Shown here piece after piece: positions 6,259 to 45,000 of a DNA stretch of 64,000 nucleotides. Numbering within the stretch: position 1 is the first letter of the stretch; each line of letters begins with the position of its first letter. The stretch covers positions 868,001-932,000 of the forward strand of contig OZ218965.1 in assembly GCA_965112735.1 (NCBI GenBank), given 5' to 3'. The position numbers were made by a program, and so were the translations under genes. A model generated the notes under the pieces. The model did no database searches and was not told where the DNA came from. It saw nothing but the letters and a program-made list of their open reading frames with translations. The stretch comes from Phaeosaccion multiseriatum (Eukaryota > Protista > Ochrophyta, other classes).

Positions 6259-7024
6259 TTACCACCAGCCACCCCACTTCTTGTGGCCCCACTTCTTGTG
6301 GCCGCCCCAGCCGCCCCACTTGCGGCCGCCCCAGCCACCCCACTTCTTGTGGCCCCACTTCTTGTGGCCGCCCCAGCCGCCCCACGAGCCAGAGCCAGAG
6401 CCGGAGCCGGAGCCAGAGCCTGACCAGGACCCAGAGCCGGACCAGCTATACGTGCGGGAAAGGAGGGCGAGGAGGGCAGCATGGCCAAAGCGAAGAGGAA
6501 GACGAACGAGTCCGAGTCGAGGCCCGTCACGGGGCAGTGAAGAGGAAGAAAGAGAGGCGCGATGCGTAGCGCGAGGAGGGCAGTATGGCCAAAGCGAAGA
6601 GGAAGACGAATGAGTCCGAGTCGAGGCCCGTCACCGCAGATGAAGAAAGAGGGCGCGATGCGTAGCGCGAGGAGGGCAACATGGCCAAAGCGAAAAAGGA
6701 AGACGAACGAGTCCGAGTCGAGGCCCGTCACGGGGCAGTGAAGAGGAAGAAAGAGGGCGCGATGGGTAGCCACAGAAAGAGGTAACGAAGAGAGAGGAGA
6801 AGACGCGAAGCGAAGTCAGTGTCGAGCGCAAAGATCAGAAGATAGACAGCCACGCAGAGACAAAGAAGAGGAAGAGAAGAGCGGAGCAAGCTGGGTCAAA
6901 ATGCGTATGTCTTTGCTTCAAGCACTCACAGTTCACGCTGGTCCTCCTCGGCGAGCGGCACGGTGGCGCCAGTGACGAGGGCGAGGGCGGCGATGAAGCC
7001 CAGGAGCACGTGCATGATGTTCAT
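6259..7024 (-). CDS. Secreted RxL-propeptide Gly/Ser/Trp/His/Lys-rich peptide precursor P1 (93 aa)
   Basis: Exon 1 7024-6930: MNIMHVLLGFIAALALVTGATVPLAEEDQRE(L). Intron GTGAGT...TAG 6929-6446. Exon 2 6445-6259: [61 protein letters not shown]. Good start context (ccaccaccATG). Confidence 0.88.
6468..6770. repeat. ~100-bp tandem repeat (3 copies) inside the P1 intron
   Basis: atggccaaagcgaa...gagtccgagtcgaggcccgtcac...gcgcgatgcgtagc recurs three times. The P2 and P3 introns carry a single copy of this segment. Confidence 0.85.
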
Positions 7025-7249
7025 GGTGGTGGTAGGAGAGGTTGGAGAGACAAAGGCGTTGTCTTGGCAGGGTAGGGTTGGTTGTGATGCCCTAGGGAGG
7101 AAGCATGTCATGTCAAAGATACTTTGGTATCCCTCAAATAAAAGGCTCCAAGGGCGCTTTGGCCGGACCACCCGACTGGAGGGGCTCCGGGTTGGGATGC
7201 CAGTCCAGTCCTTACAATCCTTCCCATTCCTCGCTGTACTGCGGCACGG

Positions 7250-8060
7250 GAGGAGATGGCCATGGTCTACAGTGCGGCGATTGCCGTGCTCCTCGCTAAG
7301 CTGCGTCTTCCCAACGCCGTCGGGCACACGGTGAGTGGCCTCCCGGAGATGGACTTTGTGGGGAATGTAGGTGCTGAGAGAGTCTTGCTCTCGTGCCTCG
7401 CAGCACGTACTTGTCCACGGTGTGACGGGTGCTCGCTCTGCTCCACTCGATGGTCACCTCGTCCCCGTCACTTGCTCCTTCGTGGCGAATGTGGCTTCAG
7501 ATTGCGGCGATCTTGCTGTCCTTGTTAGTACCAATACCGGAGGCGCAGATTATGAGTACTGATTTGACACTTACCCCTTTCTCGGGAGCCATCATCTTGC
7601 TTCGTCGCTCGTGCCCAGACCTGCACGGCGTCCGGCCACTGCTGTCTCGACCTTTCACGCGACGCCTGCACAGCGGATGAGGACGAAGAAGGCGTACAAG
7701 GTGGGCGTGGTGCGCATGCCTCCTGCTCACCGATCCGACCCCCCCTTGCGGCCTGCATGAGCTCTTGCTCATACCCTCCGCCCTTGATCTTTGCTTTGTT
7801 GCTCTACGCTACTATGTGCTGCGCGCACGCTCAGGGACTTTGCCGACCGCGCCACCGCGGCACTAGCTACAGAGGAGACTAGTCCCACAGGGGATTTGAC
7901 GGGCGTTCCATTGAGCTCTGGTGGCGCAGTAGAGGGAGCGAGCGCATGAGAACCTGGAGTGTTCGATCCGTGCTTCTCCTGCAGCGCGTTTGGGTGCGTC
8001 TTCCCCACCCTTGTGCCCGCTCACAGTGCCGTGTCTTTGTTCTTCCTCGCTTCCTCTTTG
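7250..8060 (-). pseudogene. Decayed spliced coding-like segment upstream of each peptide gene (paralogues at ~11150-12300, ~13750-14600, ~17260-18450)
   Basis: GTAAGT/GTACGT donors and exon-like blocks (EKHGSNTPGAHALAPS..., DCKIAAIRGHIRNEGASNGDEVTIEWSRAS). An in-frame TGA and indels differ between copies. Confidence 0.35.
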
Positions 8061-8447
8061 AAGCGACTTCTACTTCCACACGTGCGTGAGTCCTCTTGCT
8101 TGATCCTAAGTCTCGATCTCGGCAGCGAATGGGGACAATGACTATCGAGCGGGAGGCGGATCGCCGCGGAGGCCTCTGGCAAAGCTGAGGCCTTCATTTA
8201 TTTCCCAGGGGGCCCACCCAAAAAGACCTACCCAATAACTCAAAAACCTGGATTATTCTGCCAAGAAGGCTGTTTGCTTCGCCTTCACGCCCCCACTGGC
8301 TCATCTACGCCTCTCCATTCGCTCAGCGGCTTGTTGCTACTGGTCCGGGTCAACGCCTCTCGGTCAAGCACCGCCCAGGCTAGTAAGTGCTACGGATGGA
8401 TGGCCTGCTTGCTCATAGACCGCTCGTGTGTGGCTTGTGGAGCAGGC

Positions 8448-8700
8448 TGTTGTAGTTCGGAAAGAGAGAAGGAAGCGCTGGCAAGCGTAGACGAAAGGAA
8501 AGCTGAGAGACGAGAAAAAGCCTTGGTGAAAAACCGAGTAAATTACTAAGATCTCCTGCTAGGAGAGAACTATCGCACGTGAATATGACCACGTGGAGCC
8601 TAGGGGTAGTCAGAGTTAAGTAACTCTACAGTCAAGCGCAAAAAAGGAAGTCAATGAATCTTCTGTAACTGTACAGGAATGTCACACACACACTATGATA
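8448..8700. mobile_element. Probable solo LTR (253 bp) with 5-bp TSD CAGGC
   Basis: Absent from the paralogous site (14951-14970 ggagcaggcctgctg). CAGGC at 8443-8447 and 8701-8705. Starts TGTTGTAG and ends CTATGATA (degenerate CTACAACA). AT-richer than flanks. Confidence 0.7.
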
Positions 8701-9046
8701 CAGGCCTGCTGCCCCCCCCCCCCCCCGAACTCTCCCCTCGTTCAGGACGCTGGTCGCCTCAACCCTCTTTGACGAAGGTCCTTCTCGTCACTGTCTCCTC
8801 CCTTTCCAACCGATGCAACTCTAACCCTGTAGTCCCTTGTGTTCCTGACTTTCGAATGCCTTCCATCCATCTGGCTGTGCTTCACTTGCTCAGCTTGCGT
8901 GTGCCCCAGACGCAGACGCAGGACGCGCGGAGGCCTTCGACACGAGCGAGCAGTAGCCCCGAGGTCAAGGCGTCAGGTGGTTCTCCCTCCGCACCTCGAG
9001 CAAGAAGGGGAAGGCGAGTGTCTGGCCGCAGGCGATCATAGGTAAT

Positions 9047-9619
9047 GGCAGATGTACTGTGGAAAGGTGCGCTAAGTCTGAATTCCGCGAAGGGCTTTGC
9101 CGTCGACTTGGTGGGGCCCGCTTCTGCTCTGTGCAGGGCTGCGGCACGCATGCGAAGAACGGAGGCGTTTGTGTGAAGGTGAAGCGCTGCCGCATAGAGG
9201 GGTGCCAGAAGCAGGTGCAGCGAGGAGGCGGTTGCATTTCTCATGGGGCTCAGGTCAAGCGCTGCCGCGTTGGAGAGTGTGATAAGCTGGCGCGCGGAGG
9301 GACGTGCAACGGCATGTGCGAGAGGCATGCGCGCATCAGCAGCGAGGGAGGAGGCAGAGGAGAGAGACAGCGCGCGCTCAAGAAGGCCTCCCCCGCAATG
9401 GCCGCTAGGAGGGCGAGGCGTGCACGGGAGGGAAGGGCAAGAAGCGAGGAGGGAGGAAGTCTCGCACCGCCTCTAGCCCTGCTGCCGCTGCTCGTGCACA
9501 GGGGTAAGGGTAAGGGGGGGAGCAGCCCAATAGCCGTCGTGCAGCGAAGAAGAGGAAGGCACACCGTGTGGGGGACGAGGTCCAGCTGCCGAAGCGGTTC
9601 CGCAGGTACCGCTGAGTGA
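9047..9619 (+). CDS. WRKY19-like C-x4-C...C-x2-H zinc-finger repeat protein, partly degenerate (start or 5' exon unresolved)
   Basis: Four repeats: CTVERCAKSEFREGLCRRL, CSVQGCGTHAKNGGVCVK, CRIEGCQKQVQRGGGCISHG and CRVGECDKLARGGTCNGMCERH. The first two lack the His ligand. Confidence 0.55.
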   Translation, partial: GRCTVERCAKSEFREGLCRRLGGARFCSVQGCGTHAKNGGVCVKVKRCRIEGCQKQVQRGGGCISHGAQVKRCRVGECDKLARGGTCNGMCERHARISSEGGGRGERQRALKKASPAMAARRARRAREGRARSEEGGSLAPPLALLPLLVHRGKGKGGSSPIAVVQRRRGRHTVWGTRSSCRSGSAGTAE

Positions 9620-10188
9620 CTATTTGTGCGCCGACGGGCTCAGAGAGATGGCGGGACGTGAGATGAACAGAAGGTTGTGATTGGCGTTATAGAGGGCGAT
9701 GTGGAGTGCCTTGAGTCTTGAACTGAAGAGGGAATGGAGAGGAGCAGGGCTGCATGTGGGAGTTAGACGACCTCGTTTGTCTTCTACTCGCCGGGGATGG
9801 GTCCGTGAAGAGGCAGCGATTGAGCAATAATGGCGTGGCTGCTAGGGCACCCTCCTCAGCTGCCGAGGCTTTAGGCCACCGAGATTCCCTTGGCGGCAAG
9901 TCCATGCAGAGCATGCAGGGCGTTGGGGCGCAGAGAGCTAACACATACCGAATACATATTACGACCTGTCGCTACGCCTCCTTCTTCTCTCCAATCAGCA
10001 GGTATACAGTAGCATGAGGACAGTAGCAGAGGATCAGGGCGGGGAGGAAGCGCAGAGATGCGCGCGAAGGGAAAGCAGGGAGCGACGCTGATAAAGCAGC
10101 ATTGCGAGCGTTGAGGGGTGAAAATTGTGTTTAAATTAGATATGCCCGGCTTATCCTGGAGGTCACCCGTTTGTCTCTGTGGTCATAT

Positions 10189-10936
10189 TCACCATCCGTA
10201 TCCGTGCTTGTGGCCGCGGTATCCGCCCCACGAGCCAGACCCAGAGCCGGACCCAGAGCGCCAGGAGCCGGAGCCAGAGCCTGAGCCGGAGCTAGAGCGC
10301 GAGGAGCCGGAGCCGGAGTGTGACCAAAGGGTCCTTGCATGATAGTGGCCGTACTTCTTGTGGCCATACTTCTTGTGGCCGCGGTATCCGCCCCACGAGC
10401 CAGACCCAGAGCCGGACCCAGAGCGCCAGGAGCCGGAGCCAGAGCCTGAGCCGGAGCTAGAGCGCGAGGAGCCGGAGCCGGAGCCAGAGCCGGAGCTAGA
10501 GCTCGAGGAGCCGGAGCCGGAGCCAGAGCCGGAGCTAGAGCTCGAGGAGCCGGAGCCAGAGCCAGAGCCGGAGCTGGAATGCGAGGAGCCAGACCAGCTG
10601 TGCGTGTGGGAAAGGAGCGAGGAGGGCAGAAGCGAAGAGGAAGACGAACGAGTCCGAGTCGAGGCCCGTCACGGGGCAGTGAAGAGGAAGAAAGAGAGGT
10701 GCGATGCGTAGCCACAGGAAGAGGTAACGAAGAGAGAGAAGACGCGAAGCGAAGTCAGTGTCGAGCGCAAGAGACCAGACAAGATAGACTGGCACTGAAA
10801 AGTGGAGCTATATGCGCACGTCCAATCCTTCCAGCACTTACAGTTCACGTTGATCCTCCTTGATGAGCGGCACGGTGGCGCCAGTGACGAGGGCGAGGGC
10901 GGCGATGAAGCCCAAGAGCACGTGCATGATGTTCAT
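10189..10936 (-). CDS. Secreted RxL-propeptide peptide precursor P2 (167 aa; two modules separated by an internal ARTL site)
   Basis: Exon 1 10936-10842 (...TVPLIKEDQREL). Intron GTAAGT...CAG 10841-10598. Exon 2 10597-10189: WSGSSHSSS(GS/S)n...[79 protein letters not shown]. Confidence 0.88.
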
Positions 10937-12953
10937 GGTGGTGGTAGGAGAGCTTGGAGAGACAAAGGCGTCGTCTTGGCAGGGCAGAGTTGGTTGTGAT
11001 GCCCTAGGGAGGGAGTATGTCCTGTCATTCCAAGATACCTCTCAAATAAATAAAAGGCTCCAAGTGCGGCCTGACCACCTGATTGTGAGGGGCTCCGGGT
11101 TGGGATACCAGGCCAGTCCTTATAATCCTTCCACCATTCCTCGCTGTGCTGCGGCATGGGAGGAGATGGCTATGGTCTACACTGTGGCGACTGCCGTGTT
11201 CTGCGCTATGCTGCGTCTTCCCAACGCCGTCGGGCACGCGGTGAGTGGCGCGTGCAGGTGCGCTTGTGTGGCCTTTGAGCCCCGTGTTCTCTGGCTCCGC
11301 AGCAGGTGGTGTCTGGGCCTCCCGGTGATGGACCTTGTGGGGAATGTAAGTGCTGAGAGCGCCGTCGCTCTCGTGACTCGCAGCACGTAACTTGTCCACA
11401 GTGTGACGGGTGCTCGCTCGCTCTGCTCCACTCGATGGTCACCTCGTCCCCGTTACTTGCTCCTTCGTTGCGGATGTGGCCTCTGATTGCGGCGATCTTG
11501 CAGTCCTTGTTCCCAATACCGGAGGCGCAGATTATGAGTACTACTACTATGATTAGGTTCGATTCGACACTTACCCTTCCCCTTCGTTCCCTTCTCGCGA
11601 GCCATAATCTTGCTTCGTCGCTCGTGCCCAGATCTGCGCGGCGTCCGGCCACTGCTGTCTCGATCTTTCACACGATGCCTGCACAGCGGATGAGGACGAA
11701 GAAGGCGTACGAGGTGGGTGTGGTGCGCATGCCTCCTGCTCACCGATCTGACCCCCCCGTGTGGCCTGCCTGAGCTCTTGCTCACACCCTCCGCCCTTGA
11801 TCTTTGCTTTGCTGCTCTACGCTTCTATGTGTGCTATGTGTGTGCTGCGCGCACGCTCAGGGGCTTTGCCGACTGCGTCACCACCACTAGCTACAGAGGA
11901 GACTGGTGCCACGGGAGATTTGACGGGCGTGCCATTGAACTCTGGTGGCGCAGCAGAGGGAGCGAGCGCATGGGCACCTGGAGTGTTCGATCCGTGCTTC
12001 TCCTGAGAGGGAAGGAGGTGCGAAATAAGGTCGTGTAGTAGCGTCTTGAAGTTGGGCGGGATTGGAGGAGAGCAGAGCTGCACGGCTTGAGGGCCTCAAC
12101 GCGATCGAGAAGGATGCGCAGGTAAGGCAGAGGAAGGATAGAAGGAGGAAAGAGAGCCGAAGAAAGGTACTACCCCGCGTGATGTTCTCAGAACATGATA
12201 AATATATCAATACCCATTGAATAGTCGTGGCCCACGATCCTGCTCCCTCTCTGCTAGTCGTGCATGCCGCCTGCCTCACGGAGCCAGACTCGTTGACACA
12301 GTCACCCATCGCTTCACCGCCCCCCCTTGATTTACGCTCCTCGTCAGCCTCGCTCTTCGCAACTCCCGCCGCAAGTTTGGCTGCCTCTCTTCTCCGTCAG
12401 GCCCTTTTGTGCGCTCATAGTGCCCGCACTATGTTGCCAAACCCAACAATATCTCCTCTCTCCTCGGATTATCTCGGGCCCTTATCCTCGCTCGCTCTCC
12501 GAAGCAACCCGGGCACGTCGCTAGTCGAAGCAGTTTGTACGCTATACCAGCGGATCTTCTTTTTTAAAATCCTGAGTCTCGACGCCTGCACAGGATGGTC
12601 TCTCGGATCGCCGCCGAGACCTCTGGCAATCAGCCTCTACCGTAGAGCTGGTTGCCTTACCAATACGCCCACTTAGCCATCTAGCCTCTGATTCACTCAT
12701 TCACTTTAATGATGTGCGCCTTTACGCCCCCACTGTCATCTACACCTCTCTATCGCCGTGAGAAGGCAGAGCGGACGGGGATCAACGCAGACAGGGGCGC
12801 GGGGAAGGAAAGGTTCGGTGTAATCGGCAATACGGCGACAACGGAAGAGCGCCGCTTCAACAACCAACTCGAAGCAATTGCCAGTGTGTTGATTGCGTGA
12901 TTCAATTATGTGTTATCCTGACCCCGGCTTATCCTGGGGTTGTCATTTATCCT

Positions 12954-13528
12954 CTACCATCCATGGCCATGTCCATGACCGTAGCCGTGCCACCCACGGA
13001 GGGTTCTTGCGTGCCATCCACCGTACTTCTTGTGGCCGTACTTCTTGTGGCCGCCCCAGCCGGACCCAGAGCCCCAGCCAGAGCCAGAGCCGGAGCCGGA
13101 GCCAGAGCCTGACCAGGACCCAGAGCCGGACCTCCAGCTGTGCATGTGCGAACGGAGCGCGAGGAGGGCAACATGGCCAAAGTGAAGAAGGAAGACGAAC
13201 GAAGACGAACGAGTCCGAGTCGAGGCCCGTCACGGGGCAGTGGAGAGGAAGAAAGAGAGGTGCGATGGGTAGCCACACGAAGAGGTAACGAAGAGAGGAG
13301 AAGACGCGAAGCGAAGTCAGTATCGAGCGCAAGAGACCAGACAAGATAGACAGCCACGCAGAGACAAAGAAGAGGAAGAGAAGAGCGGAGCAAGCTGGGT
13401 CACAATGCGTATGTCTTTGTTTCAAGCACTCACAGTTCACGCTGGTCCTCCTCGGCGAGCGGCACGGTGGCGCCAGTGACGAGAGCGAGGGCGGCGATGA
13501 AGCCCAGGAGCACGTGCATGATGTTCAT
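12954..13528 (-). CDS. Secreted RxL-propeptide peptide precursor P3 (92 aa; internal ARTLR site)
   Basis: Exon 1 13528-13434, intron 13433-13138. Exon 2 13137-12954: [60 protein letters not shown]. Confidence 0.88.
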
Positions 13529-15299
13529 GGTGGTGGTAGAGAGCTTGGAGAGACAAAGGCGTTGTCTTGGGAGGGTAGGGTTGGTTGTGATGCCCTAGGG
13601 AGGGGGTATGTCATTTCCAAGATATTTTGGTATCTCTCAAATAAAAGACTCCAAGGGCGCTTTGAACCGACCACCCGACTGGAGGGGCTCCGGGTTGGGA
13701 TGCCAGGCCAGTCCTTACAATCCTTCCCATTCCTCGCTGTACTGCGGCATGGGAGGAGATGGCCATGGTCTACAGTGCGGCGATTGCCGTGCTCCTCGCT
13801 AAGCTGCGTCTTCCCAACGCCGTCGGGCACGCGGTGAGTGGCCTCCCGGTGATGGACTTTGTGGGGAATGTAAGTGCTCAGAGAGTCTTGCTCTCGTGCC
13901 TCGCAGCACGTACTTGTCCACGGTGTGACGGGTGCTCGCTCTGCTCCACTCGATGGTTACCTCGTCCCCGTCACTTGCTCCTTCGTGGCGAATGTGGCTT
14001 CAGATTGCGGCGATCTTGCAGTCCTTGTTACCAATACCGGAGGCGCAGATTATGAGTACTACTACTGTGATTAGGTTCGACTCGACACTTACCCCTTTCT
14101 CACGAGCCATCATCTTGCTTCGTCGCTCGTGCCCAGACCTGCGCGGCGTCCGGCCACTGCTGTCTCGACCTTTCACGCGACGCCTGCACAGCGGATGAGG
14201 ACGAAGAAGGCGTACAAGGTGGGCGTGGTGCGTATGCCTTCTGCTCACCGATCCGACCCCCCCTTGCGGCCTGCATGAGCTCTCGCTCATACCCTCCGCC
14301 CTTGATCTTTGCTTTATTGCTCTACGCTACTATGTGCTGCGTGCACGCTCAGGGACTTTGCCGACCGCGCCACCGCGGCACTAGCTACAGAGGAGACTGC
14401 TCCCACAGGGGATTTGACGGGCGTTCTATTGAGCTCTGGTGGCGCAGTAGAGGGAGCGAGCGCATGGGCACCTGGAGTGTTCGATCCGTGCTTCTCCTGC
14501 AGCGCGTTTGGCTGCGTCTTCCCCACCCTTGTGCCCGCTCACAGTGCCCGTCTTTGTTCTTCCTCGCTTCCTCTTTGAAGCGACTTCTACTTCCACACGT
14601 GCGTGAGTCCTCTTGCTTGATCCCAAGTCTCGATCTCGGCAGCGAATGGGGACAATGTCTCTCGAGCGGGAGGCGGATCGCCGCGGAGGCCTCTGGCAAA
14701 ACTGAGGCCTTCATTTATTTCCCAGGAGGCCCACCCAAAAAGACCTACCCATAACTCAAAAACCTGGATTATTCTGCCAAGAAGCTGTTTGCTTCGCCTT
14801 CACGCCCCCACTGGCTCATCTACGCCTCTCCATTCGCTCAGCGGCTTGTTGCTGCTGGGCCGGGTCAACGCCTCTCGGTCAAGCACCGCCCAGGTTAGTA
14901 AGTGCTACGGATGGATGGCCTGCTTGCTGATAGACCGCTCGTGTGTGGCTTGTGGAGCAGGCCTGCTGCCCCCCCCCCCCAACTCTCCCCTCGTTCAGGA
15001 CGCTGGTCGCCTCAACCCTCTTTGACGAAGGTCCTTCTCCTCACTGTCTCCTCCCTTTCCAACCGATGCAACTCTAACCCTGTAGTCCCTTGTGTTCCTG
15101 ACTTTCGAATGCCTTCCATCCATCTGGCTGTGCTTCACTTGCTCAGCTTGCGTGTGCCCCAGACGCAGACGCAGGACGCGCGGAGGCCTTCGACACGAGC
15201 GAGCAGTAGCCCCGAGGTCAAGGCGTCAGGTGGTTCTCCCTCCGCACCTCGAGCAAGAAGGGGAAGGCGAGTGTCTGGCCGCAGGCGATCATAGGTAAT

Positions 15300-15870
15300 G
15301 GCAGATGTACTGTGGAAAGGTGCGCTAAGTCTGAATTCCGCGAAGGGCTTTGCCGTCGACTTGGTGGGGCCCGCTTCTGCTCTGTGCAGGGCTGCGGCAC
15401 GCATGCGAAGAACGGAGGCGTTCGTGTGAAGGTGAAGCGCTGCCGCATAGAGGGGTGCCAGAAGCAGGCAGCGAGGAGGCGGTTGCATTTCTCATGGGGC
15501 TCAGGTCAAGCGCTGCCGCGTTGGAGAGTGTGATAAGCTGGCGCGCGGAGGGACGTGCAACGGCATGTGCGAGAGGCATGCGCGCATCAGCAGCGAGGGA
15601 GGAGGCAGAGGAGAGAGACAGCGCGCGCTGAAGACAGCCTCCCCCGCAATGGCCGCGAGGAGGGCGAGGCGTGCACGGGAGGGAAGGGCAAGAAGCGAGG
15701 AGGGAGGAAGTCTCGCACCGCCTCTAGCCCTGCTGCCGCTGCTCGTGCACAGGGGTAAGGGTAAGGGGGGGAGCAGCCCAATAGCCGTCGTGCAGCGAAG
15801 AAGAGGAAGGCACGCCGCGTGGGGGACGAGGTCCGGCTGCCGAAGCGGTTCCGCAGGTACCGCTGAGTGA
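15300..15870 (+). pseudogene. Frameshifted copy of the WRKY19-like zinc-finger gene
   Basis: Near-identical to 9047-9619, but with a 2-bp deletion (gaagcaggtgcagcg to gaagcaggcagcg near 15468) and a Cys-to-Arg change (GGVCVK to GGVRVK). Confidence 0.7.
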
Positions 15871-16439
15871 CTATTTGTGCGCCGACGGGCTCAGAGAGAT
15901 GGCGGGACGTGAGATGAACAGAAGGTTGTGATTGGCGTTATAGAGGGCGATGTGGAGTGCCTTGAGTCTTGAACTGAAGAGGGAATGGAGAGGAGCAGGG
16001 CTGCATGTGGGAGTTAGACGACCTCGTTTGTCTTCTACTCGCCGGGGATGGGTCCGTGAAGAGGCAGCGATTGAGCAATAATGGCGTGGCTGCTAGGGCA
16101 CCCTCCTCAGCTGCCGAGGCTTTAGGCCACCGAGATTCCCTTGGCGGCAAGTCCATGCAGAGCATGCAGGGCGTTGGGGCGCAGAGAGCTAACACATACC
16201 GAATACATATTACGACCTGTCGCTACGCCTCCTTCTTCTCTCCAATCAGCAGGTATACAGTAGCATGAGGACAGTAGCAGAGGATCAGGGCGGGGAGGAA
16301 GCGCAGAGATGCGCGCGAAGGGAAAGCAGGGAGCGACGCTGATAAAGCAGCATTGCGAGCGTTGAGGGGTGAAAATTGTGTTTAAATTAGATATGCCCGG
16401 CTTATCCTGGAGGTCACCCGTTTGTCTCTGTGGTCATAT

Positions 16440-17045
16440 TCACCATCCGTATCCGTGCTTGTGGCCGCGGTATCCGCCCCACGAGCCAGACCCAGAGCCG
16501 GACCCAGAGCGCCAGGAGCCTGAGCGAGAGCCTGAGCCGGAGCCAGAGCTGGAGCCGGACCAGCTGTGCGTGTGGGAAAGGAGCGCGAGGAGGGAAAAAC
16601 GGCCAAAGCGAGGCGTACCCAGAGGCGACGAGGAAGACGAACGAGTCCGAGTCGAGGCCCGTCACGGCAGAGGAAGAAGAGAGGCGCGAAGCGTAGCCAC
16701 AGGAGGAGGTGACGAAGAGAGAGGAAGACGCGAAGCGAAGTCCGTGTCGAGCGCAGGTCACGGAAGAGGAAGAAGAGAGGCGCGAAGCGTAGCCACAGGA
16801 GGAGGTGACGAAGGGAGAGGAGAAGACGCGAAGCGAAGTCAGTGTCGAGCGCAAGAGACCAGACAAGCTAGACACAGGCACGCAGAGACAAAGAAAAGGA
16901 AGAAAAGAGCGGGGGCACAAATGTGCATGTCCAATCCTTCCAGCACTTACAGTTCACGCTGGTCCTCCTCGGCGAGCGGCACGGTGGCGCCAGTGACGAG
17001 GGCGAGGGCGGCGATGAAGCCCAGGAGCACGTGCATGATGTTCAT
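16440..17045 (-). CDS. Secreted RxL-propeptide peptide precursor P4 (72 aa)
   Basis: Exon 1 17045-16951, intron GTAAGT...CAG 16950-16564. Exon 2 16563-16440: [40 protein letters not shown]. Confidence 0.88.
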
Positions 17046-17538
17046 GATGGTGGTAGGAGAGGTTGGAGAGACAAAGGCGTTGTCTTGGCAGGGTAGGGTT
17101 GGTTGTGATGCCCTAGGAAGGGGGCATGTCCTGTCATTTCCAAGGTAAATATAAGGCTCCAAGGGCGCTTTGGCCCGACCACCCGATTGGAGGGGCTCCG
17201 GGTTGGGATGCCAGGCCAGTCCTTACAATCCTTCCCATTCCTTGTACTGCGGCATGGGAGGAGATGGCCATGGTCTACAGTGCGGCGATTGCCGTGCTCC
17301 TCGCTATGCTGCGTCTTCCCAACGCCGTCGGGCACGCGGTGAGTGGCCTCCCGGTGATGGACTTTGTGGGGAATGTAAGTGCTGAGAGCGTCATTGCTCT
17401 TGTACTCGCAGCACGTACTTGTCCACGGTGTGACGGGTGCTCGCTCTGCTCCACTCGATGGTCACCTCTTCCCCGTCACTTTCTCCTTCGTGGCGAATGT
17501 GCCTTCAGATTGCGGCGATCTTGCAGTCCTTGTTACCA

Positions 17539-17793
17539 TCGGCCCTGGAAGAGGTTATCAGATTACTGATTACGGCCGGCGCAGCCGGCCTGATTACTGA
17601 TTATGGCGCCAGCCGGGCCTGATTACTGATTATGGCCGGCGCCAGCCGGGTCTGATTACTGATTATGACCGGCGCCAGCCGGCCTGATTACTGATTATGA
17701 CGGGCGCTAGCCGGCCTGATTACTGATTATTGGCGCCAGCCGGCCTGATTACTGATTATGACCGGCGCACACTGTAACCTCTTCCAGGGCCGA
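17539..17793. mobile_element. MITE (255 bp) with 19-bp TIR, 6-bp TSD TTACCA and internal ~30-bp tandem repeats
   Basis: TIR tcggccctggaagaggtta (17539-17557) and taacctcttccagggccga (17775-17793). TTACCA at 17533-17538 and 17794-17799. Empty paralogous site gtccttgttaccaataccgg at ~14021-14040. Interior is (gattactgattatggcgccagccggcct)-like repeats. Confidence 0.9.
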
Positions 17794-19475
17794 TTACCAA
17801 TACCGGAGGCGCAGATTATGAGTACTGATTTGACACTTACCCCTTTCTCGGGAGCCATAATCTTGCTTCGTCGCTCGTGCCCAGACCTGCGCGGCGTCCG
17901 ACCACTGCTGTCTCGACCTTTCACGCGACGCCTGCACAGCGGATGAGGACGAACAAGGCGTACAAGGTGGGCGTGGTGCGCATGCCTCCTGCTCACGGAT
18001 CCGACCCCCCCTTGCGGCCTGCATGAGCTCTCGCTCATACCCTCTGCCCTTGATTTTTGCTTTGTTGCTCAACGCTACCATGTGCTGCGCGCACGCTCAA
18101 GGGCTTTGCCGACCGCGCCACCGGCACTAGCTACCGAGGAGACTGTTCCCACGGGGGATTTGACGGGCGTGGCATTGAACTCTGGTGGCGCAGAAGAGGG
18201 AGCGAGCGCATGGGCACCTGGAGTGTTCGATCCGTGCTTCTCCTGAGAGGGAAGGAGGAGCGAGATAAGGTCACGTAGCAGCATCTTGAAGCTGGGAGGA
18301 ATTGGAGGAGAGCAGGGCTGCACGTCTTCAGGGCCTCGACGCGATCGAGTGGGATACGCAGGTAAGGTAGAGGAAGGAGAAGGAGGAAAGAGAGCCGAAG
18401 AAAGGTACTACCCCGCGTGATGTTCTCAGAACATGATAAATATATCAATACCAATGGAATAGTGGTGTCCCAAGATCCTGTTCCATCTCTGCTAGTCGTA
18501 TATATATGCCGCCTGCCTCACGGAGTCAGACTCGTTGGTACCGTCACCCATCGCTTCGCCGCCCCCCCTGGATCCGCGCTCCTCGTCAGCCTCGCTCATC
18601 GCGACTCCTGTAAGCGAGCTAGGCTGTTTCTCTTCTCCGCCAGGCCCTTTTGCGCGCCCATAGTGCACGCACTTTGTTGCCAAACCCAACAATATCTCCT
18701 CTCTCCTCTCCATTGTTTCGGGCTTTTCTCCTCGCTCGCTCTCCGAAGCAACCCGGGCACGTCGCTAGCCGAAGCGGTTTCTACGCTACATGAGCGGGTT
18801 CTCTTCTCCAAATCCTGAGTCTCGACGCCTGCACAATGAACGGAGACAAGTGTCTCGGATCGCCGCCGATGCCTCTGGCAAATCTGAGGCCTTCATTTGT
18901 TCCCCAGGGGCCCCACCCCCAAAAAGCGCTGACCCCCTGAGTCTACACCTACTTAACTTCTGCGCTGCGCTGCAGAGTAAGTAGCTCATGTGCTGGGACA
19001 CTTGGACTCTACAGTAGTGTTGCTTGCGTCACCGTCACGCCTACTTAGTCATCTACGCCTCTTCATTCGCTGTATGAGCTTGTTGCTGCTGGGCCAGGTC
19101 AACGCCTCTCTTGGGAGATGGCTCCAAAGGCCTCAAATGTGCTCCTGAAGCTGAGCCCTGGAGAAGGATGCGATCCTTCTCTCGTTTTTGTGTCGCACTC
19201 ATCCGTCAAGGATATGATTCTCCGGCCGATCCTGGCCGATCCCTCGAACACGTAAGATCCAAGAGGAAATCGCTGCCCTTCAGCTCTCTCATGTCTTGCT
19301 CACTCAGACTTCCCACCTGTGCGGCCTTCCCGTTCACCTCAGGGCGAAGCTCGTGCAGGTGCGCCTGCGCTTCATTGGGTGCTGGATAGACACCCTGCAT
19401 AGCTTTTGTATCCTCCTGATCAGCTTGAGGAAGACGGTGGAGCAGAAGGGGGGAAGGGGCTCGCGTGGGAGGGGC

Positions 19476-21466: not shown

Positions 21467-32460
<10,994 letters not shown>

Positions 32461-37636: not shown

Positions 37637-40600
37637 ATGTTCTCTGGCGGTATGATTTCCTCGCTGCTTCTGCTGCCCTTGGCAGCGTTGCTTTGCCTCC
37701 CTTGCCAGATCGCAGGGCAGGCCGAGTGCCAGCTGGGGGGTGCCTACTACTTTGGAGGGGAGAACCGGGACGATGCCATCGGATGGAGTCTGACAACCAA
37801 GGTAGGCGCACAGAGCCACAGGATGCAGGCAAACTTGGGGTTCACTGGCAGCTCGGGTTTTTCGTTTTTCGTTTCCCTGACTTCTCCCTTCCATCCACCA
37901 TCTCTGTTGTCTCCCTCAGGACTACTACGATGGCGCGGCCCCAGGTGGTAAGTCCCTTGCTCGGTTTGGGGTGTGTGTCTGCGTTGGTTGTTCGCCACAG
38001 TCTGCACCCAAACGGACGAAACGCCCATGCCTTCAACTTGTCTCTTCGCTCTTGTTCCCTCTCTCGCCTGCTGCTCTGCCTCGACTCATGCAGTGCCCCG
38101 ATGGTACGCCAAGCTGCAGTTGGCCGACACGGACCTCTGGCAGCGGAACCCTTACATCAGGTCCGTCTTCTTCGAGCGATACGATCCCGCCCTCAACTCC
38201 TGGTTACCGCTCTTCTCCTGGATGGGGGACTACGCAGTCAGAGACACCACCTTCCCCAGCGTCCCGCTAACCTTTGACGGAAGAACCAACCCGGGAGAGA
38301 TCCCAGATAACGACTTGATCGAGGGGAGCAACTCGGAACTCACATGGCGGGTCACCTTCCGCGGCGGATCATGCCCGCCGGGAACTACTTCGGTGCGTGA
38401 AGTAGGCAGGCAGGCAGGGAACTGGTTTGGGAGAGCTCTCCCTCTCTCTCTCCTCCCCCACCCCCACCTCATTTTGTCTCTCTCTCTCTGCCTGCCTCCC
38501 ACATGCTGAGGTTTGGGCGGACCGTTTTACCCAGCACATCCTCTCCTTTTTCCCCGCCCCATCAGAAATACGCCTCCCACCTCACAGTCTCGCGGCCTCA
38601 CCCCCCACCCCCCCCCCCTCCCCCTCTCTCTCCCTTCCCCTCTCCTCATCCTATGCATGTACTGTGGTCTGCGCTGCACCACCCCAGCCTGTGACCATGC
38701 CTCACTACGGCTTCACAGAGGGAGGGGTCGAGCACAGGGCGGTGGCAAGCGGTCTCTACCCGCCTCGCACTATGCCGGACTCTTTCCATTTTGCCGGAGC
38801 TCAGGACAATTCCCTGTGTGCCCCAGGGGGAATCTACGCCACCACTGCGAGCCAGGGACCAGATGGTGAGTGAGGGAGTGAATGAGGGAGAGAGAGAGAG
38901 TGCGTGAGGGAGAGAGAGTGCGTGAGTCATCCAGCCGTGGTGAGATGAAAGACAACACGATACTGACACACGAGCCTCCGCTACTCTCCTCCCCCCCCCC
39001 CCTTCCCGCCCCTCGCTCTTGGTCCGCCCGTGTACAGAGTGGATGGATTACATGAGGGCCACCAAGCTGCCGGATTGCCGCTGGCAGATCGACTTGAACC
39101 TGAAGGGGGACATTGTGAACCATCCTTACATGGAGTTCATCAGCATGCGATTTGCTCTGACAAATGGGGTCGAGTCGACTCGCCTACTTCTCCACTTCCC
39201 TGGTCAGTCCCTCAAGACCATCATCACGGAACGTGTGCCCTGTGACGTGGAGCATATGAACGTGCGCCTTCTCATCTTCTTCGACGAGCTCGACTCCACC
39301 TCTCTCATCAACGCCGACAACAGCTGCGGCGAGGGCCTTCCGCCGGTGATTCCCAACTTCTGTATCGGCGATGGCGTGCAGTACTCCGGGGCAGACTTCT
39401 TGGACGCGACAAGTGCGGAGTGTGAGAGTGGGCTGGGCTCGGATGGTGTGGAGGGCGTCGCTCCCACGCCCACGCCCACTCCCCCACCAGTAACCAGCGT
39501 CACCACTCCGGGGAGCGGTTACCAAGATGCTTGTGTCTGTAACGGCTTCGTGGGGCCCGTCAAGCAGCAGGTGTGTGGCAATGAGGAAGGGGGAAAGGCG
39601 GAAGATAAGCCTTACGTAATTATTGCTAAGGTGGTTTGTATATTGTCTCATGGCGAAGAGAGGGGAAGCGCCATCCTCTCTGCTGCCCGGACAGTGTGCA
39701 GAGAGAAGCTCAGCAGAGAGAGAGAGAGAGAGCGCTCGCGAGAACCAACCCCTTCACTGCGACTTACTTACTCCACCTCGCCGCCCCCCGCCCCCCCCCC
39801 TCCTCCTCCTCCTCCTCCTCCTCCTCCTCCTCCTCCGCCCCTCCTATCTCCTCAGTGCTTCGAAGACCCTGCTTGCGCCACCGGCGGCCTGGGCTGCTTC
39901 GGGGACAGCAACGGCCTCGACTGCCGCTTCTGTGGATGGGGCCCCTTCCCAGACTGCCCTGGATCCGCCACTGTCCAGCCCACCGCTGCGCCACGCACTG
40001 CCATACCCACTCCCACCCCTGCTGTAGTCACTCTCCAACCCTCCTCGAACCCCCCCGATGAGATTGGCACCGCACCAACGGGGCCACCTACGGCACCACC
40101 AACAGCAGCTCCGTCCGCGACGCCACCACCAACACGTACACCAACGCCTGCTCCTGTTGTGCCCGATGCGGGTGGTGCCCAGTGCCAGTGTAACGGCAGA
40201 CTCCCCAACGGCCAATCCGAGCAGGTATGTTGGTGATGGTGTGCAGTGAGGCCTTGCTGTAGCGCATCACCTTTGACACGCACTAGCAAGCGCTTGTGTG
40301 CTTGCGGAGTCCTCTCCGCCCACCCCCCCTCTCCAGCTCTTCCTCCCCGCCTCTTGGTTAACGAACGCCCCCACCCGCCCCCCCCCGCTGTTCTCTCGTG
40401 CTGTCGACTCTCCCCTCTCTCCTCTTCCCTCCACAGTGCTACGCTGACCCCTCTTGCGGAGTTTCGGGGAGCCAACTTGGGTGCTACACCGACCCCAACA
40501 GCGTCGCGTGTCGCTTCTGCGGTTGGGGGCCCTTCGTTGACTGCCCTCAGTCTTCAACCACCCCACCCACCGCTGCTCCACCAACAGCAGCACCAGTGGC

Positions 40601-41194
40601 AGCGCCAACAGCCGCACCAGTGGCAGCACCAACAGCGGCACCAGTAGCAGCGCCAACAGCAGCACCAGTAGCAGCACCAACAGCAGCACCAGTGGCAGCG
40701 CCAACAGCGGCACCAGTAGCAGCACCAACAGCGGCACCAGTAGCAGCGCCAACAGCGGCACCAGTAGCAGCGCCAACAGCGGCACCAGTGGCAGCGCCAA
40801 CAGCAGCACCAGTGGCAGCACCAACAGCGGCACCAGTAGCAGCACCAACAGCGGCACCAACAGCACCACCAACAGCAGCTCCAGTGGCGTCCGGCACCCC
40901 CTGCCTGTGCGAGGGCAGACTGCCCAACGGGGAGAAAGAACAGGTAAGGCCTGTGTTGCTTCACTGAGTGCTTGCTGTACTTGTACTGCTGTTGCTGCTG
41001 CTGCTGCTACTATATCTATTCCTTATTCTAAAGAGCATCTCCCTTCCCTCCATTGCTCCCTCGTCGTTCCCCCTTCATTCCTCTCGCAGTGCTATGCCGA
41101 CCCCACTTGCCCCGGGTTGGGTTGCTACACGGACTCAAACAACACCGTCTGTCGCTTCTGCGGTTACGGCCCCTTCGTCGAGTGCCCACAGTAG
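37637..41194 (+). CDS. Secreted protein with unknown N-terminal domain, three Cys-rich 'LGC...CRFCGxGPFxxCP' repeats and Pro/Thr/Ala mucin-like linkers (8 exons)
   Basis: Signal peptide MISSLLLLPLAALLCLPCQIAG. Phase-compatible exons 37637-37801, 37920-37947, 38094-38392, 38688-38865, 39038-39570, 39856-40224, 40437-40943 and 41090-41194. (AAPVAAPT)n at ~40590-40885. Confidence 0.88.
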
Positions 41195-42081: not shown

Positions 42082-45000
42082 TCACAACACTGACACCGAC
42101 CCCTCTGATGGCAAGCTCAACCCTGCGCCTAAGCCTGAGCCGGAGCCGGAGCCGGAGGTGATATCATCTTGTTCTTCCAAGTGGGAGGAATGATCATCCC
42201 CCCCACCCATCTCCAGCAAACGTAGGGCGTTATTCCGCCCGTCCTCCCTCGCGTGGCTGAGGGCAATCATCTTTGCGTCCCTCCGCCTCAGTCGTTCCAC
42301 CATCTCTCCCACCCCACTCGCTCCCACCACATGCCATGCTACCCACGCTCGGAAACCAAACAACACACGCCGGGGCAGGGGCCAGGAGGCACGAATCGCT
42401 CTCTGCAGCAGTTGTACATCCGAAACCGTCAAACCAGAGTCGTCGCCAACGTGGTCCACCATCCGGGCATCGATGGTAATGACTTGCGGCCTCTTCTCCT
42501 CCTTGCGGATCGCTCTCTGCGCGGCTCTCTCCCTCTGTCTGCTCCTCCGGGCATCTTTTCTTTGCCTTGCCCTCTCCTCCACAGCACGCTCGTCCACTGT
42601 CACCCCCCTCCTCCCTAAGAACCTCAGCAGCCGTGCTCGTCCCCTCCCCACGGAACTCCGAAGGCCTCGCCGCATGCGCCTCCCGCGCTTCTTCAGAGCA
42701 GCCTTTACTCCTCTCCCCTCCTTCTGCCCTCGGTCTCCCTCCTGCTCCTGCTGTACCACCAACTGCTTCACCTTCAGCCCATCCCCCGCCCTGGCCAGTG
42801 TGCGCTGCGATATACCACCTCGACTTAGTAAGTAGGGCACCTCGAATCTGTCCAGCTCCAACAAGTCGTCCTGATCAAAGAGGTGAAAGCACTGAGCTAT
42901 GCGCTTCCCCACCGCGTCATTTGCTGCCATCCGTTCATATCGATCTCTCTGCTCCATCTCCATCGCCTGGGCCTCCTCTCGCTCCTCTCGCGCCGTTTCC
43001 TCGGCCTCTCGCTCCGCCCATTTCCTGACCCCCTCGCCCTCTCCTCCTCTCCCCCCCTCTCCCTCTCCCTCTCCCGCGGCGACAGCAGCAGCAGCAGCAG
43101 CAGCGGCGGCGGCTGCAGCTGCAGTCCCGACCCCCTCAGCGTCCTCCCTCTCCCTCTCCCTCTTTCTTCGACTCCGCTCGCGCCTCCTCCTCCTCGCCCA
43201 CCTCCTTGCCCCTGGCCATCCACGCCTTACAGAAAGCCAGGTCAGCCTTTTACGCTGCTCCTTCCTCCCCTTGCGGCAGCGCTGCTCGATTGTGGCCATC
43301 CTCTGCTTCCCCACCTGGGTCCACCGTTCAGCAGAGGGTGCAGATGTATTCAAGATTCAAGGTTTCAGTTTCAGTTTCCTAATGTGCACAATTTTACGGA
43401 CACGGACCCGGACCCCCCCTTTCCTCCCCACCCGCCCCTTGACATACTACCCACCCTTTTCAACCCACCCACCCCTTGACTTACTCCCACCCACCCACCC
43501 ACCCACCCACCCACCTACCCACTCACCTTTGTTTTGTAGTACTCTGTGGCCTCTCTCTCTGCAAGCTGCTCTGCCTGCCCGAGGACTCTCCTGAGCTTCG
43601 CCTGCCCCACCCTCCCCCCACCACGTAGCCGCACAAGGGGCACCGCGTGGGCGTGTGCGTGTGCGTGGGCGTGCACGTGACCATGGTCCCCTCTTGGCAC
43701 CACCACCCCATCTGGACCCGCGGTCGTCGCCAACGGCGTAGACCCAACATGTGCAGGAGCAGCAGCAGGAGTAGCAGCCGCTGCAGGAGGAACAGTTGGT
43801 GTTACAGCCCCTCGTCCCTCCACCCTCACCCAATGCTCATCATCCTCCTCGCCAAGCTCTCTGGCCACATTGAGTCTCTCAAAGGCCCTTGCCTCCGCCA
43901 TCATGCCATCCACTGCCATCTGACTGAAGAAGGCGGCCTCTGAGCGATGGCAGTGGAGGGGCAGGAGCAGGCGAGCTCCAGTGCCCCCTTCGCAGGCCGC
44001 GTGGAGGACCGTCCGCCGCTTGCGACGCACCCACCACGACCGCATGGCAATTGCTCCGGAGAACCACTTTCCCCACTTGTTGGTGCTGCTGCTGCCGCTG
44101 CCGTTGCTGCTGCCGCTACTGCTGCTTTGCCTCGTTGTCATGCTCCTGTCTTCCTCCTCCTCCTCCTCCTCCTCCTCCTCCTCCTCCTCCTCCTCCTCCT
44201 CCTCCTCCTCGTCCTCGTCCTCCTTCTCCTTCTCCTTCTCCTCCTCCTCTGCGTCGCCTGCTCTCAACCCCTCACCACCTCCCGGCCACCTCCTCCTCCT
44301 CCTCCTCCTCCTCCTCCTTCTCCCCATTCTCGACAGCCATGGCCTCTTTGCCTCTTCCCTCTGCAGCGGGAGTCTCAACGCGGCGGTCAGCGCCCCCCAG
44401 AAGGGTTCGAACTCGACTCTCTTGAGTTGCTTGGCGTCCGTTGCCCTTCCATCGTGACTCAGGACATTGAGCCCGTTGGGGCCAAGGATGGAGTACGGGA
44501 GGCCGGAGGTAAGGGCGGGGTACCCCAGGAACCGAGCAATACGCTGTGGGTAGGGGATGAGGGCAGGAGGAGGGAGGGGGAAGGAGGGAGGGGGGGGGAG
44601 GAGGGAGGAGGAGGGAAAGGCAGAGGGAGAAGGAGACGACGAGGTTGCATCGCTTGAGTGTCAAAGACGGGCCGGGCTGTGTTGGAACACAAGAGAATGA
44701 GACTCTGCCCCCCCCCCTCCTCGCCTCCTCTTACCTGGACCAAATACGGAAGCTCCCCCACGTCTACAGCAGTCTCGCTCGCCACCTCCCGCGGCAAGGC
44801 CATCGTCGGCCCCAAATGCTGATTCCACATCCACCGTACCACAACCTCGAAACGCTCTCTCCCGGGGGGGAAGCGACGCTGAAACGCCGTCAGCTCTCGC
44901 CACTCCTCTCTCAGCGCGTGCTCACACCGCCATTGCTCTCGATTGCCCATGCGTGTACGAGCGAAGGCCTTCACGTCGGCGTAGGCCTCTGCCTCTGCCT

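Follow-up and report, generated by a model that had tools for sequence, protein, structure and literature searches.

Cleavage at Arg-x-Leu (RXL) motifs has been documented in diatom precursor proteins, including the multi-unit Sil1p (PMC4557024). The motif follows the signal peptide of many silica-associated diatom proteins, where it is thought to be cut by one unidentified endopeptidase, and it also separates the units of Sil1p, frustulins, cingulins and silacidins (PMC4557024, PMC5525289, PMC5501833). Here we describe an internal R-x-L motif, A-R-T-L, encoded by two of four small predicted peptide genes (P1-P4, all on the minus strand) in a 64,000-nucleotide (nt) stretch of Phaeosaccion multiseriatum contig OZ218965.1, referred to below as the window. 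The examined span, 10189-13137, extends from the P2 stop codon through the first base of P3 exon 2. From the diatom and oomycete data we infer that the single most likely role of ARTL, with a probability of about 0.4, is that of an R-x-L site cut after Leu by an RXL-type protease.

An RXL located five residues from the C-terminus of the diatom protein Tp12162 has been treated as a cleavage risk (PMC9650480), and Parmales, the sister group of the diatoms, retain the RXL domain (PMC10328945). Phytophthora proteins are cut at RXLR after the Leu and before the second Arg, only if the motif is close to the signal peptide and in disordered sequence; the cleaved oomycete motifs lie within ~30-40 residues of that peptide (PMC11754927). 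For diatom silica proteins the protease has yet to be found (PMC5525289, PMC5501833), and that acting on oomycete RXLR effectors is not firmly identified (PMC11754927). Screens for silaffin-like proteins have relied on KXXK repeats (X = S or G) spaced 1-6 residues apart (PMC5501833), or on pentalysine clusters (PMC9650480).

ARTL motifs in the predicted products of P2 and P3

The exon-2 product of P2 comprises a long Ser/Gly run with Trp, the basic block G-H-K-K-Y-G-H-K-K-Y-G-H-Y-H, the A-R-T-L motif and a 45-residue unit, in that order. A sequence-only reading of the DNA had placed ...YHARTL directly before WSHSGSGS in P2 and WHARTLR before a different, His-rich tail in P3, and the minus-strand translations bear out both: P2 reads ...GHKKYGHYH-ARTL-WSHSGSGS..., and P3 reads ...GGWH-ARTL-RGWHGYGHGHGHGW-stop, its product ending in ...H-K-K-Y-G-G-W-H-A-R-T-L-R-G-W-H-G-Y-G-H-G-H-G-H-G-W. 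The same reading had likened the second module of P2 to the whole of mature P4. This is true of the last 27 residues of the P2 unit, which are identical to the end of the P4 exon-2 product, while the overall lengths differ (45 and 40 residues, respectively).

10327-10338, minus strand: internal A-R-T-L of P2 (precursor residues 119-122), a candidate R-x-L cleavage site
10192-10326, minus strand: second module of P2, 45 residues (W-S-H-S...G-Y-G-W)
12999-13010, minus strand: internal A-R-T-L of P3 (precursor residues 75-78), followed by R
12957-12998, minus strand: tail of P3 after ARTL, 14 residues, rich in His, Gly, Trp and Tyr

An internal R-T-L is found once in P2 and once in P3, and in neither P1 nor P4. 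In ordinary proteins an R-x-L by itself carries little weight, but here the motif stands out by its composition: in the 296 exon-2 residues of the four genes (G 101, S 93, W 31, H 21, K 19, R 14, Y 11, and two each of A, T and L), Ala, Thr and Leu are confined to the two ARTL motifs. The codons for H-A-R-T-L are CAT GCA AGG ACC CTT in P2 and CAC GCA AGA ACC CTC in P3, giving three differences, all of them synonymous; the probability that three random changes in these codons are all silent is 0.019-0.025 (a post hoc value for five codons). Immediately 5' of HARTL, the two preceding codons (H-Y in P2, G-W in P3, with an aromatic residue beside His in both) differ at five of six bases, and the sequence 3' of ARTL cannot be aligned between the two genes. 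Because of the unique composition and the synonymous-only divergence of HARTL, the motif is a distinct and probably constrained element.

The residue directly before H-A-R-T-L is aromatic in both genes (Tyr in P2, Trp in P3), and the residue following R-x-L in the family as a whole is Trp at five sites and Arg at one. The AlphaFold model of P2 exon 2 had a predicted local distance difference test (pLDDT) value of 43 and no secondary structure; the product is thus predicted to be unstructured and ARTL would be accessible. P1 is of a Trp type (H-K-K-W) and P2-P4 of a Tyr type (H-K-K-Y). The tail of P1 contains a 66-nt (22-residue) duplication of its own, of a W-G-G-W-G-G-H-K-K-W-G-H-K-K-W block with G-G-R-K-W at the joint (within 6259-6445, minus strand). 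The basic end of P1 is hence also made of two blocks, with a basic pair where P3 carries H-A-R-T-L-R.

Leader exon and gene models

The window consists of GC-rich (~59%) eukaryotic DNA with intron-rich genes. A 36-nt leader start was found in four copies on the minus strand, at 7024, 10936, 13528 and 17045, where none would be expected by chance. Every copy opens a 95-nt exon 1 that closes in ...QRE plus two bases of a Leu codon, and in all of P1-P4 the Leu codon of R-E-L is split CT/C by a GT..AG intron. The donor after the leader exon is GTAAGT or GTGAGT, and the acceptor was taken as the first one with a pyrimidine tract (...CACAG or ...TATAG), 484, 244, 296 and 387 nt downstream in P1, P2, P3 and P4, respectively. 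Across the predicted junction the frame continues L-W-S or L-W-R in four of four genes, yielding precursors of 93 (P1), 167 (P2), 92 (P3) and 72 (P4) residues. An alternative acceptor at 10333, which would join the leader in frame to T-L-W-S-H, has no pyrimidine tract and was taken as a chance occurrence.

6259-7024, minus strand: P1 gene (exon 1 6930-7024, intron 6446-6929 of 484 nt, exon 2 6259-6445), Trp-type, without ARTL
10842-10936, minus strand: P2 exon 1, signal peptide and short stretch ending R-E-(L), the Leu codon being completed by exon 2
10598-10841, minus strand: predicted P2 intron, GTAAGT...CACAG, 244 nt
10189-10597, minus strand: P2 exon 2 including the stop codon, with a 135-residue low-complexity product
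13434-13528, minus strand: P3 exon 1 (leader)
12954-13137, minus strand: P3 exon 2 including the stop codon, with a 60-residue product, preceded by an intron of 296 nt
16440-17045, minus strand: P4 gene (exon 1 16951-17045, intron 16564-16950 of 387 nt, exon 2 16440-16563), single module, without ARTL
6928-6930, 10840-10842, 13432-13434 and 16949-16951, minus strand: in-frame stop codon at the donor of each gene, so that an unspliced transcript would encode the 32-residue leader only

The leader exons are 92.6-100% identical among the four genes, that of P2 sharing 93.7% identity with P1 and P4 and 92.6% with P3 (six or seven bases differ), while the introns, of differing length, are 77-92% identical. 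By inspection, all four products start like a signal peptide, with a 12-residue hydrophobic core (V-L-L-G-F-I-A-A-L-A-L-V) followed by the small residues T-G-A and then A-T-V-P-L-(A-E or I-K)-E-D-Q-R-E. R-E-L sits 11-13 residues past the likely signal cut in each of them, and the 13-residue stretch ending in R-E-L is acidic in P1, P3 and P4. The splicing described here is predicted from the DNA, as are the expression and secretion of the products and their cleavage at R-E-L.

Further observations were made on the non-coding parts of these genes. A retained intron would put TAA or TGA right after R-E-L in all four (donor CT/GTAAG or CT/GTGAG). A unit of ~100 nt is present as three tandem copies in the P1 intron (6478-6778) and as one copy each in the introns of P2 (10620-10719) and P3 (13181-13280), and its varying copy number largely explains the difference in intron length. 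Approximately 1 kilobase (kb) upstream of each gene is kept in all four copies (7235-7981, 11145-12005, 13738-14499 and 17243-18245) at 71-98% identity; this region could be a promoter, a 5' untranslated region or another small gene.

Proposed processing of the precursors

Each of the P1-P4 precursors would consist of a signal peptide, a 13-residue stretch ending in R-E-L and a block peptide, the last being released as a small, secreted, unstructured and cationic product. The block peptide would begin with a Ser/Gly run interspersed with Trp and continue with a basic aromatic block of G-H-K-K-Y/W repeats. In P2 and P3, the island formed by an aromatic residue and H-A-R-T-L would most likely provide a further Arg-x-Leu site for processing. 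It would be cut after Leu, within the secretory pathway, by an endoprotease of the type that frees diatom proteins of their RXL pro-regions and cleaves RXL/R in oomycetes. P2 would then give peptides of 90 and 45 residues, and P3 peptides of 46 and 14 residues. The figure of about six peptides from four genes, given in the sequence-only reading, is a sum that presupposes this cleavage. Judged by composition, the Ser/Gly run could serve as a carrier of phosphate or sugar, and the combination of this run with a Lys/His/Arg-aromatic block suggests a self-assembling wall, adhesive or mineral-associated material.

Recombination history of the cluster

The DNA encoding the P2 motif lies between the two copies of a perfect repeat, and the 3' end of the gene is shared with P4.

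10372-10483, minus strand: copy 1 of a perfect 112-nt repeat internal to P2
10207-10318, minus strand: copy 2 of the same repeat
10319-10371, minus strand: unique 53-nt stretch between the copies, encoding K-Y-G-H-K-K-Y-G-H-Y-H-A-R-T-L-W-S-H and so holding the motif
9585-10269, no strand assigned: 685-nt tract without a single difference from 15836-16520 (3' end and flank of P4)

The 685-nt tract, which comprises the last 81 coding bases of P2 and 604 nt of flank, is by its identity a recent duplication or gene conversion. The 400 nt upstream of P2 are, at 78-83% identity, the most diverged of the family. A larger duplication of ~3.2 kb (95-100% identity) relates the region from upstream of P1 to the P2 3' end (7036-10269) to that from upstream of P3 to the P4 3' end (13539-16520). 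At both ends it stops within exon 2 of a flanking gene (P1/P2 and P3/P4), and it looks like the outcome of unequal exchange or gene conversion seeded by low-complexity coding repeats. Exon 2 of P1 and that of P3 are alike for ~120 nt and unrelated thereafter. On these comparisons, P2 is a mosaic and the family is one reshuffled by exchange within its low-complexity exons.

Similarity of the flanks pairs P1 with P3 and P2 with P4, whereas ARTL is carried by P2 and P3. In the simplest explanation, the two motifs probably had a single origin, after which ARTL was either lost from P1 and P4 or passed from one copy to another. The DNA 3' of ARTL in P2 best matches the second W-S-G-S block of P1 and P3, the sole clear match. 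Possible sources of ARTL itself were sought in intron 3' ends, exon-2 starts and the leader exon; the apparent matches to the intron end or the leader (a shared AGGACC) can be aligned only with ad hoc gaps and are no better than chance.

Sequencing records and search for relatives

Four sequencing runs, all from one sample, contain the stretch. Over 10100-13600 they consist of short genomic contigs that extend over introns and spacers as well and break at repeats, and their listed contig pieces do not span the unique 53-nt stretch of P2. Homology searches were made exon by exon, the joined reading being computed only to find the frame. Word-indexed protein searches with P3 exon 2 and with P2 exon-2 residues 56-135 returned no relative, and the ESM Atlas likewise gave none. 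A metagenome DNA pattern scan for the leader exon and a protein-guided metagenome scan were both without a match. In Pfam (E up to 10) the sole match was Serglycin on the S-G runs, which is meaningless, and an exhaustive HMMER search of 1.84 billion representatives matched only a 1621-residue repeat protein through its G-S runs, a compositional hit. P1-P4 appear to be a tandem, lineage-restricted orphan family of two-exon genes.

Weighing cleavage against other explanations

A number of points count against cleavage at ARTL. The second module of P2 begins with W-S, as does the mature N-terminus, which the sequence-only reading had pointed out correctly; the feature is not diagnostic, since W-S or W-R also opens internal blocks without any R-x-L (at residue 7 of P1, 8 of P3, 57 and 112 of P2 and 17 of P4). 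As this module lies within a very recently exchanged tract, the two-module state may be young and the layout need not be selected. P1 and P4 manage without the motif, and the distance of ARTL from the signal peptide is ~56 residues in P3 and ~100 in P2, compared to ~30-40 in cleaved oomycete motifs (PMC11754927). No K-x-x-K of any kind occurs in P1-P4, with at most 4 Lys per 14-residue window, which sets them apart from silaffin-like proteins as defined by KXXK. None of the four runs is on record as RNA, conservation of the motif is seen between two paralogues, no relative having been found in the protein and metagenome searches, and RXL processing in this alga is argued by analogy. The view that R-x-L is a real, repeated signal gains from the unique composition, synonymous-only divergence and unstructured context of ARTL; it loses from the two motifs probably being one inherited element and in effect a single observation, and from the synonymous-only test being post hoc and limited to five codons.

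The recombination history bears most directly on the idea that ARTL is a neutral scar, a junction remnant of joined paralogue exon-2 pieces kept for lack of time, with the two-module form of P2 a recent accident of unequal exchange. Such an origin would fit the mosaic nature of P2, its 5' half being the most diverged (78-83% upstream) and its 3' end 100% identical to P4 over 685 nt, as well as the perfect 112-nt repeat on both sides of the motif, the ends of the ~3.2-kb segment inside exon 2 of both flanking genes and the loss of P1/P3 similarity beyond ~120 nt. It is at odds with the three synonymous and zero replacement changes in HARTL despite heavy divergence of the adjoining codons, and with only seven residue types being tolerated elsewhere in the 296 residues, from which it can be argued that foreign residues are normally purged; nor did the intron ends or the leader exon offer a convincing DNA source. 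We consider a scar unlikely. The signs of constraint that speak against it (unique composition and synonymous-only divergence) fit a functional but uncleaved ARTL as well as they fit a cleaved one. P2 and P3 would then remain single chains, with ARTL acting as a short conserved hinge, as a spacer breaking up the low-complexity blocks, or as a signal for modification or docking that is read by a sorting receptor, a kinase or a glycosyl- or hydroxylating enzyme. The conserved unit, an aromatic residue plus H-A-R-T-L, even exceeds what a bare R-x-L protease site requires, and in P1 the corresponding position, where its two blocks meet, is taken by another basic joint, G-G-R-K-W. Even so, no known motif of the hinge, docking or modification kind was found, the only feature that ARTL has in common with the rest of the genes is R-x-L, as in the leader, and the role documented for R-x-L, in proteins secreted by related lineages, is that of a cleavage site (PMC4557024, PMC11754927). 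An uncleaved role is therefore judged unlikely.

That the loci are not expressed protein-coding genes at all appears quite unlikely; they would then be duplicates in decay, or repeats whose reading frames are open simply because no frame of a GGC/TCC run contains a stop codon. The absence of RNA among the runs and of homologues in the searches agrees with this explanation, and the Ser/Gly runs are indeed open in all frames. It is contradicted by a leader exon that is identical or near-identical and of good signal-peptide shape in four of four copies, and by conserved donor and acceptor sites that keep the frame across four different intron lengths. Furthermore, insertions and deletions add up to multiples of three where exon 2 can be aligned, repeated two-base changes from TGG to TAC or TAT preserve an aromatic residue, and the composition is strictly limited to seven residue types.

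Other features of the window

Outside the peptide cluster, open reading frames (ORFs) with beta-galactosidase domains (Bgal_small_N, E = 3.7e-30; LacZ domain 4) occupy 21467-26702 on the minus strand and probably represent exons of a single gene. At 44459-48903, also on the minus strand, long ORFs carry EF-hand motifs. A tandem array with a 24-nt period is located at ~40583-40875, where one frame reads A-A-V-G-A-A-T-G and another is rich in Leu, Val and Pro (tblastn output).

Significance and comparison with known systems

If this alga uses R-x-L for cleavage both after the signal peptide and internally, these orphan genes would constitute a simple natural substrate set for finding the RXL protease, offering short, easily tagged and unstructured substrates. 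R-x-L cleavage would then be an old and general stramenopile step rather than one specific to silica. In its widest form, the proposal is that cleavage after Leu at R-x-L is a shared stramenopile secretory code, common to diatom RXL, oomycete RXL/R and this non-diatom alga, which here packs two peptides into each small precursor, new ones arising by paralogue recombination; stated this broadly, we hold it to be rather unlikely. The block design of the peptides matches that of self-assembling wall, adhesive or mineral-directing peptides.

Among oomycete proteins, RXLR effectors share with P3 that they are secreted stramenopile proteins, and R-T-L-R of P3 stands in predicted unstructured sequence. 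The sequence-only reading had matched this R-T-L-R to the RxLR consensus, and the four letters do agree. The motif is located at precursor residues 76-79, ~56-59 residues past the likely signal cut and with 13 residues behind it (disorder being assumed by analogy with the P2 model), and the exon-2 products of P1-P4 contain no Glu or Asp anywhere, hence no EER. RXLR effectors often have an EER next and then a folded effector domain, and the P2 motif is R-T-L-W. Because of the distance from the signal cut, the lack of EER and the 13-residue remainder, P3 is not regarded as an RXLR effector. The Toxoplasma export element (TEXEL) is an R-x-L motif cut after Leu by the aspartic protease ASP5 in the endoplasmic reticulum (ER) or Golgi. 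The Plasmodium export element (PEXEL) is likewise cut after Leu in the ER or Golgi, by the aspartic protease plasmepsin V (PMC4740378). It lies near the N-terminus and depends on E, Q or D as the second residue past the cut, whereas W-S or R-G follows the motif here.

The cingulins CinW and CinY of Thalassiosira pseudonana are also secreted, have an RXL behind the signal peptide and fall into a Trp-rich and a Tyr-rich type (PMC9650480, PMC5501833), a division seen here between P1 and P2-P4. They differ in being much larger, with KXXK-rich domains alternating with aromatic-rich ones, and are restricted to centric diatoms (PMC5501833). Closest in layout are the precursors of Sil1p from Cylindrotheca fusiformis and of silacidins, which have a signal peptide, a pro-region ended by RXL and Ser/Gly/Lys/Tyr-rich cationic units separated by R-x-L, where cutting sets several peptides free (PMC4557024), and which, like P1-P4, have no fold and are lineage-restricted. 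Sil1p, by contrast, has seven units each ending in RRIL or RRNL, while no gene of the present family has more than one internal site, and that site contains only one Arg (A-R-T-L); P1-P4 are without sequence similarity to it, without KXXK or pentalysine clusters and with no known silica link. A signal peptide (by inspection) followed by RXL is shared by P1-P4 with silaffin-like proteins; in view of the missing K-x-x-K, pentalysine clusters and silica link, they are not filed as such. The suggestion of a Sil1p-like release at RXL accordingly holds for the internal R-x-L layout and fails for the repeated KXXK motifs. What the locus has in common with RXL-processed multi-peptide precursors is an internal R-x-L between units, with a P4-like unit following the site in P2, and by this analogy it may represent a new variation on known RXL processing logic in an orphan family.

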